The notes under the pieces: model-generated
What the model saw: only the letters and a program-made list of their open reading frames with translations
Told to the model about the DNA's origin: nothing
Database searches by the model: none
Assembly (NCBI GenBank): GCA_943704425.1
Contig: CALSCP010001577.1
Coordinates: forward strand, 1 to 35,112
Source: Ministeria vibrans ATCC 50519
Lineage: Eukaryota; Protista; Filasterea
Length of the DNA: 35,112 bases
Direction of reading: 5' to 3'
Part shown: piece by piece, positions 18,179-23,283 of the stretch
Layout of the letters: every line of letters begins with the position of its first letter
Numbering within the stretch: position 1 is the stretch's first letter
Position numbers and translations under genes: made by a program

Positions 18179-18246
<68 letters not shown>

Positions 18247-18755
18247 NNNNNNNNTTTTTTTTTTTCTCAGATCAACTGGAGGAGAGCATGTATGTGCGAC
18301 TGAGGATGAATGAGAAACAAACGACGAATACGTCGAATAGGAAAGGAGGGGAAGGGACGAAGGATGAGCAGGCTGCCATTTCGATTGACGATTGGTTTGT
18401 GGTGTGCCAAGATGACTGCGAGGAGCTCAATAATGGAATTGGGGGTGTAGCGAAGGGGGGAAAGAAGGAGAAGAGGGACAGGACGAGCGCCTACGGAGAT
18501 GTGCTGGAGCGCAACCACACACTGATTCGAATGCGCGCGACACCCACCAACAGTGAAGTGCCAGCCAACGGCACTTCGTCGACGATTACTAAGGCCAAGA
18601 CGCACCAGCAGCAGCGTGTGCGTGAGCGGGCGCGTTTACACGCGTTGCTCATGCAAGACGCTGAGCCATCGAGTGGCGCGGCGGCCGACTGGAAGACGCT
18701 GGACCGATCGCAGCGCAGACTACTCAAAGCATCGCAGCGCAGAGCGCACAAGTGA
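17993..18755 (+). CDS. Hypothetical protein (exons approx. 17993-18133 and 18271-18755; first exon unresolved)
   Basis: G|GTGAGT donor near 18134 and poly-T/CAG acceptor at 18270 join ORFs 17896..18303 and 18288..18755 in frame (..SETAQDQLEESMYVRL..). Acceptor TTCGCAG near 17992. Confidence 0.55.
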
Positions 18756-18954: not shown

Positions 18955-20859
18955 ATGGAGGCTGGTGCAGGGGTTCACCACCGCCACCATCACAGGAGGC
19001 CTCCTGGCGAGAATGCCTCGAAGCCTCATCCCGACAAGCTTAACACATCGACCAATTTTTCGTCCTCTTCCAAAGTACAGTCACTCGCCCTCTCTCTCCT
19101 CCCCTCACACTCCCATGGCCACCCACCCACCCACCCTCGCTCCCTCTCTTTGTCTCTCTGTCTCTCTCTTCAGGCACTGCAACGCAAGATGCAGGCGGCC
19201 AGGAGGCAGGGCGTCCTGAAAATGGTTGGGACTAATGTTGGCTTCTTGGACGATCTCTTTGTTGATGCTCTCAAACTCGCTTGGTGGAAGCTGTGTGTGG
19301 TCTTTCTCTTGGTCCTTGTCGCAGAAAGTGTCGTGTTCTTCGTGGTGTACCTCTTGGATGCGGAAGTGAGTTTGTGACGGACGAAGCTGAAACGACGTAC
19401 TAAATTGTGCGCTTTGCATCATACAGGGGCTAGAGGGCAACAGCGGTCCATACAGCATCTTCATGTTCTCCGTGTCGCTTACGACGACCTTTGGTGGCAC
19501 ACCAGTCTCTGCCAACTCCAATTTTGCACTTTTCATAGGCAATGTGCACACCTTGGTGACCATGCTTCATTTTGTCTTTGTCACGGGCGTTGTCTTTGCC
19601 AAACTCGCGCAAGTAAGACGTGGTTTTTGTTTAAAACAGAGCAAAGGGGATACGAATGAATGCTTTGCAGCCAAAACCGTGCGTAGAAATGGCAAAGTAT
19701 TTGATATTGGGGCGGCACAACGAGTCTGCTCACCCCTGTCTGTACACACGACTGGTCCTGACGAACAGTCCGCCTGAGCTCGTGGATGCACGCTTCACGC
19801 TGACTTACCGCCATCAGGTGGTCCTGCCGACGGGCCAACTTTTTTTGAAGCTCGACTCGCTCGCTCTTGCTCGTGCTGAAGCGCCCGTTCTCATGGTACC
19901 ATGATTGCGCGAGCTTTGAGTTTGTGAATGTGTGAGTTTGAATTTGCGTCTTTCAAACTCATTATCCTCTCTCGGTCATTGCGTGTGTGTCTCTCTGTGT
20001 CTCACTGTGTGTATGATCTTTATTTCTGTGACTCGTTGTGTGTGTTTATTTATTGCGTATGTTTCTCTGTGACTCACTATGTGTTTTGCATTTTATCTCT
20101 GTGACTCATTGTGCGTATGTTTATTTATTGTGTGTGTTTCTCGGTGACTCACTGTATGTATGCATCTCTCTATCTCTGTGACTCATTGTGTGTGTGTTTA
20201 TGTAGTATGCGAATACGGTTCGGCACTTCATCGATAAGGAGAGCCCTTTGCACGGCAAAACAATGAGTGATCTGGCGCGTGAACATGCGACGTTTGTCTT
20301 GTCAGCCATTGGAATGGACCGATTCTCAATGGAAACAGTTTATGCAGACAAGGTAAGGGTTTAGCCTGAATTCGACTGCAATCTCACTGTCACTCCAACT
20401 CGTTCTGAGTCTGACGCGCTACCCCTTTGCCCCATCTCACGCTCTTCCTTATTCTATTTCCATTTTGTTCTGTCTGACTGTATGTACATCTGCGTGTGTG
20501 TCTTGTTGTTTCGTTGTCAGGAATACAGTGCAGTCGATGGGGCGGTCATGACGGGCGTTGAGTTTGAGGACATGGTCTTGTACGTGCCGGACCGTCCTCT
20601 CGACCGCCAAATTGACCATGACAAGCTCAACGATCTTATTGTGTGTGAGCAAACGGTCTCGTATCGTCCAAGGAGCCGCAGTTCGAGTGCCTCTGCTTTT
20701 CCCGACGCAGACATAGACATCCCCACCCAGGCATCCTCACCTCCCCCTCTTCTCGTCCAAGAGAGTATGAGTGCCATTGCGTCCGATCTGCTCTATGCTG
20801 CGAGGAACAGTGATCGTGCCCATGACGGCAGTGGTGACCACAAGAACGGAGACAGCTAG
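18955..20859 (+). CDS. Inward-rectifier (Kir/KirBac-like) channel subunit with a non-canonical filter; exons 18955-19074, 19174-19365, 19427-19612, 19671-19895, 20206-20352, 20521-20859
   Basis: Slide helix FLDDLFVDALKLAWW, M1, pore helix IFMFSV, M2 ending TGVVFAKLAQPK. Cytoplasmic domain LALARAEAPVLM..HFIDKESPLHGKT..DL..A.FVLSAIGMD..EFEDMV..IDHDKLND. All introns are phase-0 GT-AG. Confidence 0.85.
19985..20200. repeat. Intronic minisatellite, approx. 32-43-bp units with core CTCTGTGACTCA
   Basis: GTGACTC recurs near 20028, 20069, 20101, 20144 and 20178, with alternating spacer types. Confidence 0.75.
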
Positions 20860-21228: not shown

Positions 21229-23283
21229 ATGCAGACCATTAAATGCGTCGTCGTTGGCGTAAGTAGCTCCCCTTGTGGACCATCTGTCTCCACTGCACGC
21301 TTGTGCACCCCCTAGATTCGCATAGATTTCCTCTGTGTCTCCTCCGTTTGGCCTTTTTTCGGTTTTTTTTTTTAACCAAAAACGCCCACCACGGAGAAGC
21401 GGCAACGCATGGCGCGCTCGCGTCTGCGGGGGGGACCCTTCAACTCTGCTGCTATTCGTTGACGCCGCCCCTGACATCCCTCGTCCACTGCCACTGCTGA
21501 TTTTTCGCTCCCCTTTTCGTCATTTTCGTGTATCGCTCGCGACGCTCCAATCGACCCACCGGCTCCTCCTTGGCTGCCTCTCGCCCCCTCGACACCCGCA
21601 TCACACATCCACTGCAACGCTCCGCCGCCTCCCCGGCCATTTCGCCCCCTCCCCGTCCTCTTCTCTCTCTCTCTCGCCCTTTCGCTCACCTCCCCCCTTT
21701 TTTNNNNNNNNNNGTGTCCAGACAACGCTTATACGACGCGAATTCAAATGTGCGTCAGGTGTGCAGTGAAAACTCCCTGTCGTGTTGATCCTGCGTTTGT
21801 CAGCCACGCCCCTTCCCCCGCCGCTTTTTCTCCGCTTTCTTCCTGCTCCCCTGGACCCTCTTGATCCACCCTTGAACCCATCACCCTGTCACCCTCGAAG
21901 CCATTGTCTTTTTTTTTTCTTACCTTTTTTTTTTTTGGTTTGGGCTTCTTGCGTTTTTTTTATTTTAAGCTACGACGCATACGCATCGAATTCGCCTCTC
22001 GCTGCTCCTCCCTGCGTCTGCTCTTTACCTGTATAGGACACTGCAAACGTCCGCTTGGTCGTTTTTTGATGATTCAATGCCATTTTTGAGGTCCTTTTTT
22101 TCTTTTTTTTCCATTGACTTCCTGGCACGGGCCCCGTGACATCAACGGGGCTCGCTTGCCCACACACTGCTCGCCTTGAGTCGTTGTACGACTGGGTGTG
22201 GCGCACGTGTAAGATCTGAGCAGATTTCGGCATCTTTCGATTGCCATGACGTTTTCAAAGTGTACAGTCACTTTTTCATTTTATGCTCTCCTTTGCCGTT
22301 TTTTTATTTTGTCACATACCGCTTCGTGTCCATTCTGTCCCTCCCTCAGATTTAATGCCATGCGATGAGTGGCTTTCTCTTTCTTCTCTTGACTTTTTTT
22401 TCTCTCTGTTTTTGTTGAGTTTTTTTTTTTTTGCGGTCTTACTTTGACAACTTACTAACCCCTCTTCTTCTTCTTTTTCTTCTTCTTCTTCACATATACA
22501 TATACATACAGGACGGTGCCGTAGGAAAGACTTGTCTTTTGATTTCATACACCACCAACAAGTTTCCCTCTGAATACGTCCCAACAGTACGCTCGCGCCA
22601 GCAAGACACAGTCTGTGTGTGTGTGTGCTAACCGTGTCTTCTTTTCTTTGTCTGTCTTTAACAGGTCTTTGATAACTACGCCGTCACGGTCATGATTGGC
22701 GGAGAGCCCTACACACTTGGTCTCTTCGATACAGCAGGACAAGAAGATTACGATCGACTGCGTCCTCTTTCCTACCCGCAAACCGATGTATTCCTTGTCT
22801 GCTTCAGTGTCGTCTCACCGTCCTCGTACGAAAACGTCAAGGAGAAGTGGGTCCCAGAGGTAAAGAGAACAACCACGAGAGAGAGAGAGAGAGAGAGAGA
22901 CAAAGAGATAGAGAGAGGCACAACTGACATGCTATCTTTTGTACACAGATCTCGCATCACTGCTCCAAGACCCCGTTCCTGCTTGTCGGCACACAGGTTG
23001 ACTTGCGAGAAGACCAACAGACGGTGGAGAAACTGGCAAAGAACCGACAAAGACCCATCACAGGTACGAAAAATACTCACACGCACACACACAACTGAAC
23101 AAACGCTTGCCTCCTTTTACAGTTGAAAATGGCGATAAGAGCGCGAGAGAGTTGTCAGCGGTGAAGTATGTGGAGTGCAGTGCGTTGACACAAAAGGGAT
23201 TGAAGAACGTCTTTGACGAGGCTATCCTGGCAGCACTCGAGCCACCGGAGCAGAAGAAGAAGAAGAACTGCGCTCTTCTGTAG
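21229..23283 (+). CDS. CDC42: Rho-family GTPase Cdc42; exons 21229-21258, 22512-22586, 22665-22859, 22949-23063, 23123-23283
   Basis: Spliced [125 protein letters not shown] (polybasic region plus CAAX). Probable 5'UTR intron 21056-21223. Confidence 0.98.

Follow-up and report, generated by a model that had tools for sequence, protein, structure and literature searches.

Positions 1 to 35,112 of contig CALSCP010001577.1 from the filasterean Ministeria vibrans ATCC 50519 (assembly GCA_943704425.1; this whole stretch is hereafter called the window) carry an intact gene for a Kir-fold protein with the filter motif T-F-G-G-T-P. The K+ signature T-x-G-Y/F-G is absent from the pore loop of this gene (the window gene), and its product, while homologous to the fold, is thus not expected to be a canonical K+-selective Kir channel. 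Sequence comparison places the window gene in an old eukaryotic MCamb-like clade, and within that clade, which reaches the land plants, TFGG[S/T]P appears as the old and conserved state. A previous reading of the same DNA, made from its letters alone (the original prediction), had presented the K+ signature as "replaced" in this gene; as the motif is a clade-wide consensus, the idea of a private change has to be given up.

Kir-fold proteins without the K+ signature are already known, namely MCamb1 and MCamb2, the NirBac channels, and TbIRK of Trypanosoma brucei. The MCamb proteins were reportedly first described by Takezawa and Minami in 2004, as calmodulin-binding ion transporter-like proteins. 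Three further papers present MCamb1 and MCamb2 of Physcomitrium patens as stress-induced calmodulin binders that are Kir-like and are termed "transporter-like" (PMC1952061, PMC4532166, PMC8655846). NirBac1.1 and NirBac1.2 have the Kir fold without T-x-G-Y-G and form tetramers that are non-selective among monovalent cations (PMC4607889). The label "Kir-like" given to plant proteins in PMC8619664 refers to the unrelated KCO3/TPK lineage. Database entries for members of the family described here have names such as "IRK C-terminal domain-containing" or "hypothetical protein", no paper on the MCamb-like Kir-fold family came up when full texts were searched for the motif strings, and the family-wide resemblance of the filter to that of cyclic nucleotide-gated (CNG) channels may not have been pointed out before.

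Membership in the Kir superfamily and in the MCamb-like clade

Relatives were collected with exon 2 of the window gene as the query against 1.84 billion representatives, which gave 54 matches at E <= 0.001. One of these (P0001, 104 aa) is a fragment of the window gene in the style of an open reading frame (ORF), and two others (P0005 and P0040) are unrelated repeat proteins that were set aside; the remaining matches make up one eukaryotic protein family with a strikingly similar pore segment. The C-terminal half of one member (P0013, 731 aa) resembles a retrotransposon integrase or a chromodomain, and this entry is probably a gene-model fusion. From an alignment of 14 mostly full-length members (A1), a profile hidden Markov model was built, against which the exons of the window gene were compared. 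The gene model itself was read directly from the sequence, and every score on the window gene was taken exon by exon; all features given below lie on the plus strand unless stated otherwise.

Five exons are colinear with the family profile, and the matched pieces abut at the splice junctions. Exon 1 (19174..19365), with the slide-helix region and the first membrane helix (M1), matches profile nodes 33-76 (30.0 bits, E 1.3e-11), and exon 2 (19427..19612; 62 residues, translated without a stop), with the pore helix, the filter and the second membrane helix (M2), matches nodes 104-157 without a gap (74.6 bits, E 3.6e-25). The cytoplasmic beta-rich domain follows on the next three exons, of which exon 3 (19671..19895) holds the linker and the first half of the domain with the invariant R, L and R kept (nodes 158-240, 60.5 bits, E 7e-21), exon 4 (20206..20352) the middle part with an H-x-I-D-x-x-S-P-L block (nodes 242-288, 46.0 bits, E 1.9e-16), and exon 5 (20521..20859) the end of the domain (nodes 291-333, 12.5 bits, E 2.7e-06) and a tail of ~65 residues rich in Ser and Pro. 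The separate scores sum to ~224 bits, and the matches of exons 1, 3, 4 and 5 are independent because only exon 2 had been used to collect the family. Eight columns of A1 are invariant, and the window gene has the family residue at each of them; of the 13 nearly invariant columns open to comparison, it agrees at 11. The invariant residues are, in the membrane part, a Phe of M1, the Thr at which the pore helix ends, and an Asn, the lower Gly and a Phe in M2; the other three belong to the cytoplasmic domain. Of the M2 residues (N130, G145 and F148), the last two correspond to G143 and F146 of KirBac1.1; we take F146 to be the Phe that forms the bundle-crossing gate.

The family profile in turn matches KirBac1.1 with E 6.7e-32 and KirBac3.1 with ~1e-28, and animal Kir2, Kir4.1, Kir6 and GIRK with E 1e-17 to 1e-11, in matches that span from the slide helix through the end of the cytoplasmic domain. 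Nodes 33-157, which are covered by exons 1 and 2, align to KirBac1.1 residues 46-150, and nodes 158-333, covered by exons 3 to 5, to its cytoplasmic domain. Judged by profile score, the family is closer to KirBac than to the animal Kir channels. An AlphaFold2 model of one relative (P0018; mean pLDDT, the model's own per-residue confidence, 82.5, and ~85 over the filter) has helices at residues 33-45, 49-77, 94-111 and 123-152, which correspond to the slide helix, M1, the pore helix and M2, followed by a beta-rich domain. The known structures most similar to this model are KirBac3.1 (E 3.3e-23) and KirBac1.1 (TM score 0.76), with animal Kir channels next. Homology and this model together identify the family as a true branch of the Kir superfamily, with both the membrane core and the cytoplasmic domain predicted to be present. 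The call of a Kir-fold gene in the original prediction is thus upheld by the profile match to KirBac1.1 and by the colinear matches of the window exons to the profile.

The Pfam models for the two domains give fainter signals on single exons, which made the family profile necessary. Exon 2 alone scores 16.8 bits against IRK (PF01007; E 0.0064, positions 86-140/141) under a cut-off of 22.7, and exon 4 alone 14.3 bits against IRK_C (PF17655; E 0.032, positions 76-108) under a cut-off of 22.5. Full-length relatives exceed the cut-off of IRK_C (30-34 bits vs 22.5) but not that of IRK. The Pfam comparison that the original prediction had proposed thus gives sub-threshold matches of exons 2 and 4 to the two domains, with neither exon reaching its cut-off singly.

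Within the superfamily, the window gene stands with MCamb (AAT00626.1 / XP_024398848), and its exons 2-4 are each ~41-49% identical to the members of a moss cluster (P0055/P0056). The moss proteins and the window gene have in common the filter TTFGG[S/T]P, the Kir-like membrane and cytoplasmic domains, and the invariant residues. They differ at both ends, as the plant MCamb-type proteins are extended by 100-500 residues at the N-terminus and have a basic tail at the C-terminus, whereas the window protein has a short N-terminus and a dissimilar tail rich in Ser and Pro. Where M2 ends, the window gene reads T-G-V-V-F and the plant members S-G-A-V-F. Calmodulin binding is reported for the moss proteins only (PMC4532166, PMC8655846), and the tail of the window protein is unlike theirs. 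The closest solved structures are those of KirBac1.1 and KirBac3.1 (1p7b, 2wll, 1xl4), with the same fold and domain order, an identical length from the pore helix to M2, and the lower Gly and gate Phe in common. These are K+ channels with the filter TVGYGD, with E106 and G134 where the window gene has Ser and Thr, and they are prokaryotic and intronless.

Register of the filter and comparison with KirBac1.1

The octapeptide TTTFGGTP at 19481-19504 in exon 2, on which the original prediction was built, is exact by translation, and the exon recurs in a second assembly (Logan contig L011). The family profile aligns with KirBac1.1 (1p7b/2wll) with high posterior, and the stretch that runs from the pore helix through M2 contains no gap. 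Through this alignment and that of exon 2 with the profile, both gapless, the filter T-F-G-G-T-P (19487..19504) corresponds to T110-V111-G112-Y113-G114-D115 of KirBac1.1, in agreement with the gapless alignment and the change from TVGYG to TFGGT given in the original prediction. The modelled pore helix of P0018 stops at the invariant Thr, directly before T-F-G-G. Its equivalent in the window gene, transferred from model helix 94-111 by the gapless profile alignment, lies at 19433..19486 and likewise terminates at the family-invariant Thr, and the M2 equivalent, transferred from helix 123-152, lies at 19520..19609. The length identical to that of KirBac1.1 and the end of the modelled pore helix before T-F-G-G are the grounds on which the register TFGGT = TVGYG is favoured.

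A register shifted by two residues was considered and rejected. It arises in a phmmer alignment of exon 2 with Kir6.2, in which a two-residue gap sets TTTFGG against TIGFGG, and it would mean a "weaver-like" change from Gly to Thr at the first Gly only; the weaver change from Gly to Ser in GIRK2 loses selectivity (PMC9001731). A paralogue in the same genome (C1696) reads TTGFG and the nearest relative found (L012) reads TTYGE, both of which speak for the shift, but the exact KirBac1.1 length, the gapless high-posterior profile alignment and the end of the modelled pore helix speak against it. In either register the canonical filter would be lost.

Other residues of the pore segment can be compared in the same frame. 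E106 of KirBac1.1, the Glu of the pore helix, is Ser in the window gene, as the original prediction had noticed, and likewise in 43 of 46 relatives. The two M2 histidines that it had pointed out are both real (H41 at 19547-19549 and H48 at 19568-19570, by translation) and align with E130 and G137 of KirBac1.1. The second of them does fall on a Gly of KirBac1.1, but we take the glycine hinge of that channel to be G134 and not G137, and it is G134 that corresponds to a Thr in the window gene. Members of the non-plant subclade also have the first His, the second is absent from all aligned relatives, and a role of the M2 histidines in pH sensing is speculation.

The filter motif across the family

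Of the 46 distinct relatives whose sequence spans the pore, not one shows G-Y-G or G-F-G in the filter. The six positions are occupied by T in 39, F in 34, G in 43, G in 38, S, T or A in 43 and P in 33 relatives; most read TTFGG[S/T/A]P and the commonest filter is TFGGSP. The conservation in relatives for which the original prediction had proposed to look is seen at the level of the family, mostly in the form TFGG[S/T/A]. The family pore motif can be written T-T-[F/L/Y]-G-x-[S/T/A]-P with Ser at the E106 position, a form that T-T-F-G-G-T-P of the window gene shares, and its parallel with the CNG filter TIGETP(PP) (PMC4555469) makes the comparison with CNG channels in the original prediction an apt one.

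Members of the family occur in bryophytes (Physcomitrium patens, with a cluster that includes AAT00626.1, Marchantia paleacea and Calypogeia fissa), in ferns and gymnosperms (Ceratopteris richardii, Adiantum nelumboides and Ginkgo biloba), and in algae and protists (the zygnematophytes Closterium and Spirogloea muscicola, and Ichthyophonus hoferi, an ichthyosporean); one MMETSP transcript belongs here as well. Among the streptophyte members found, TFGG[S/T]P hardly varies. A word search that was independent of the pore, with the cytoplasmic domain of P0046 as the query, gave only three close matches, one of which, P0069 (80% identity), shares the pore of P0046, and no related loci were found in metagenome contigs searched with exon 3 alone and with a 3-sequence alignment.

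The nearest relative found is encoded on contig Ga0620614_039171 of JGI metagenome 3300071654 (L012, 812-2050). It is 54%, 45% and 33% identical to the window gene in exons 2, 3 and 1, respectively, has three intron positions in common with it, and reads T-Y-G-E-A-P at the filter, with the acidic residue that is typical of CNG filters.

Sequence constraint and the question of an artefact

An odd filter could also result from a sequencing error, from decay into a pseudogene, or from a canonical GYG exon that the gene model had missed. That single-exon Pfam scores stay under the curated cut-offs is in line with such an explanation, which we regard as highly improbable given the remaining evidence. 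The independent assembly L011 (run SRR23272272) carries the identical exon 2 and is colinear and 99.65% identical with the window over 2271 bases. Seven of its eight differences are non-coding (five of them in intron 3), and the eighth, its sole coding difference, affects the last codon and is synonymous; small as the sample is, this pattern fits the deep conservation of the protein. The frame is open over five colinear exons with canonical splice sites, every invariant residue is retained, and the motif is the family consensus. No exon encoding T-x-G-Y/F-G was found from 15.7 to 23 kb on either strand, or in its strict form in the whole window, so that the search for a normal GYG exon or a sequence error, as suggested in the original prediction, came back empty. 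Synonymous sites in the comparison with L012 are saturated, as the proteins are only 33-54% identical and match nowhere at the DNA level.

A GT-rich minisatellite in intron 3 (19978-20201) holds four of the eight differences from L011, and the fifth difference of that intron lies just upstream of it.

Ion permeation

By analogy with channels of known function, the window gene on balance probably encodes a functional tetrameric Kir-fold cation channel that is weakly selective or non-selective among monovalent cations; such analogies are the basis on which we infer its selectivity for ions, its assembly into tetramers, its gating and its role in the cell. In the proposed mechanism, the slide helix, M1, pore helix, filter, M2 and cytoplasmic beta-rich domain would assemble as one channel subunit of a tetramer. 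The filter would retain Thr-x-Gly, the inner half of the K+ signature that makes up the inner ion sites in K+ channels, and would have lost the outer-site Tyr-Gly-Asp, with Gly-[Ser/Thr]-Pro in its place as in the filters of CNG channels and their NaK2CNG mimics. With the outermost K+ site lost as in these mimics, Na+ and K+ would pass with little preference, while gating would still rely on the cytoplasmic domain and on a gate of the Kir type, with the lower Gly and the Phe of M2. A strong Ca2+ block would not be expected with Gly at the position of the CNG Glu.

In the mimics with TVGXTPP filters there are three contiguous ion sites, and Na+ permeates about as well as K+; studies of NaK variants suggest that high K+ selectivity requires four such sites in a row (PMC3082925). 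Ca2+ block in CNG channels is mediated by the Glu of the filter TIGETPPP (PMC4555469), and NaK2CNG with Asn as its X no longer binds Ca2+ (PMC3082925). The window gene has the pattern T-[V/I/F]-G-x-T-P in common with CNG and NaK2CNG filters (TIGETPPP, TVGXTPP). CNG channels, however, have six membrane helices and a cyclic-nucleotide domain, and NaK a two-helix core without a Kir domain, whereas the window gene combines two membrane helices with a Kir-type cytoplasmic domain and has Gly at the position of the Ca2+-binding Glu of CNG channels. The sequences thus point to a resemblance between the filters that is convergent and does not reflect common membership.

The NirBac channels of Anaeromyxobacter and Gemmatimonas are the best functional precedent on the Kir scaffold of the window gene. 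Their P-loops differ from that of the window gene, as those of NirBac1.1 and NirBac1.2 are unrelated to known filters and NirBac2.1 reads TTGTD, whereas the window gene keeps the pore helix and T-x-G. With NirBac being prokaryotic and the window gene eukaryotic with spliceosomal introns, the two do not form the same family, and NirBac would be an analogue in function at most.

Several points weigh against the proposed mechanism. The literature searched yielded no functional data on any member of the family. The structure is that of the relative P0018, which is ~53% identical to the window gene in exon 2, and as a monomeric model it is uninformative on the geometry of the filter in a tetramer. 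The motif counts are biased toward similar pores, the relatives having been collected with the pore exon as the query, and the nearest subclade, with M2 ending in T-G-V-V-F, is more variable (TLGISP, TYGEAP, LSGSSP and TLADAP). Finally, TbIRK, which also lacks the signature (GGYVG), keeps a permeability ratio PK/PNa > 7 (PMC5429665), so that loss of the motif alone is no proof of a loss of selectivity.

The case of TbIRK leads to another explanation, in which the channel conducts and yet prefers K+ by means of a non-canonical filter, with Thr-x-Gly and the Gly-Thr-Pro turn supplying enough carbonyl sites. TbIRK is, like the product of the window gene, a eukaryotic protist Kir homologue without the classical signature, and in oocytes it shows inward rectification along with its preference for K+; the conservation of filter Thr 1 and Gly 3 in 39 and 43 of 46 relatives would suit such a filter as well. 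TbIRK differs from the window gene in its filter GGYVG, with K+ favoured more than 7-fold over Na+, and it is located in acidocalcisomes (PMC5429665). The window filter follows the pattern T-V-G-X-T-P-P and not GGYVG, and filters of the former kind give three sites and no selectivity (PMC3082925), and we therefore consider a K+-preferring channel unlikely.

Paralogues and the possibility of mixed tetramers

The genome holds further Kir-fold genes with other filters. In the close paralogue C1696 (L002 1429-1800, minus strand; also L005 and L008), M1, the pore and M2 lie in one exon and the pore reads T-T-G-F-G-A-T. The close paralogue C313 (L006 1186-3067, plus strand) reads T-T-T-V-V-D-S-P, has a long intron-free C-terminal ORF of 464 codons, and scores 116.7 bits against the family profile in its cytoplasmic part. 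Two more distant Kir-fold genes, C2695 (L001, L009) and C1139 (L003, L007), have an animal-Kir-like N-terminal region and pore loops without T-x-G, around S-F-E-T-P and E-V-K-S-P-F-E-P. A genome-wide scan of the assembly (29.7 Mb, 2860 contigs) with the Pfam IRK model, in which only the best candidates were scored, found no locus among these that reaches the cut-off, and the genome may be without any canonical Kir. The G-F-G of C1696 resembles a canonical filter and sits two residues off in the gapless register of the family.

Paralogues with differing filters in one genome make mixed tetramers conceivable, and the protein might thus be non-conducting on its own, acting as a modulatory subunit in tetramers with C1696 and C313 or as a scaffold or sensor. 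Kir channels often assemble as heteromers, which lends this explanation some plausibility together with the presence of two close paralogues with different filters; in addition, the MCamb proteins were described as "transporter-like" and not as proven channels (PMC1952061). The gate residues and the Thr of the pore helix are family-invariant, consistent with a working pore, however, and the streptophyte members found have TFGG[S/T]P almost without exception, while the NirBac channels are stable conducting homotetramers despite their lack of the signature (PMC4607889). A purely modulatory or sensory role accordingly seems improbable, and a conducting channel with weak or no selectivity among monovalent cations stays the favoured reading.

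Further features of the gene and its surroundings

The predicted exons 1-5 are separated by phase-0 introns throughout, all with canonical GT-AG ends. The first well-supported ATG is at 19189, the donor of exon 1 is GTGAGT at 19366, and the gene ends with a TAG stop at 20857-20859, giving a predicted product of 357 residues counted from ATG 19189, or ~357-402 depending on the 5' exon. A putative extra 5' coding exon at 18955..19074 (40 codons, rich in His and Arg, with an ATG at 18955) would join in frame to 19174 through a weak GTACAG donor at 19075 and an acceptor AG at 19172-19173, which would add 45 His-rich residues. This exon has no match to the family profile (score -3.6), and its open frame, its sole support, makes it plausible that it belongs to the gene; of the "six clean exons" of the original prediction, five are thus supported by homology and the sixth is without a family match.

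The DNA is eukaryotic by its content, with nothing that points to a human contig, and has short spliceosomal introns and a gene for a Cdc42-type GTPase (21230-23000) just downstream of the window gene. The first intron of this neighbour is ~1.25 kb long and contains an assembly gap (a run of N at ~21705-21714). A very long poly-T tract at 18180-18270, with an N gap inside, is intronic to the upstream gene, whose end is at ~18755.

Implications for the family

What looks like a broken filter is a conserved family signature that extends from a protist with Cdc42 to mosses, ferns and Ginkgo. As a broader and more tentative idea, which we think possible but hold with less than even confidence, the clade could represent ancient, eukaryote-wide, non-selective Kir-fold channels that have converged on a CNG/NaK-type filter and would be the eukaryotic counterpart of NirBac, with paralogues (TFGGTP, GFGATS and VVDSP) that mix and thereby tune permeation, and with calmodulin-regulated, stress-induced cation entry as their role in bryophytes, ferns and gymnosperms. 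If the channels are non-selective, the rules of the K+ filter would become visible on a Kir scaffold in eukaryotes, as seen so far only in a few bacterial NirBac channels and, in a different way, in TbIRK. The window gene adds one more member to the family, with a compact and easily cloned architecture, and, if the reading is true, it would give a molecular function to the MCamb proteins, which in non-flowering plants are induced by stress and bind calmodulin.

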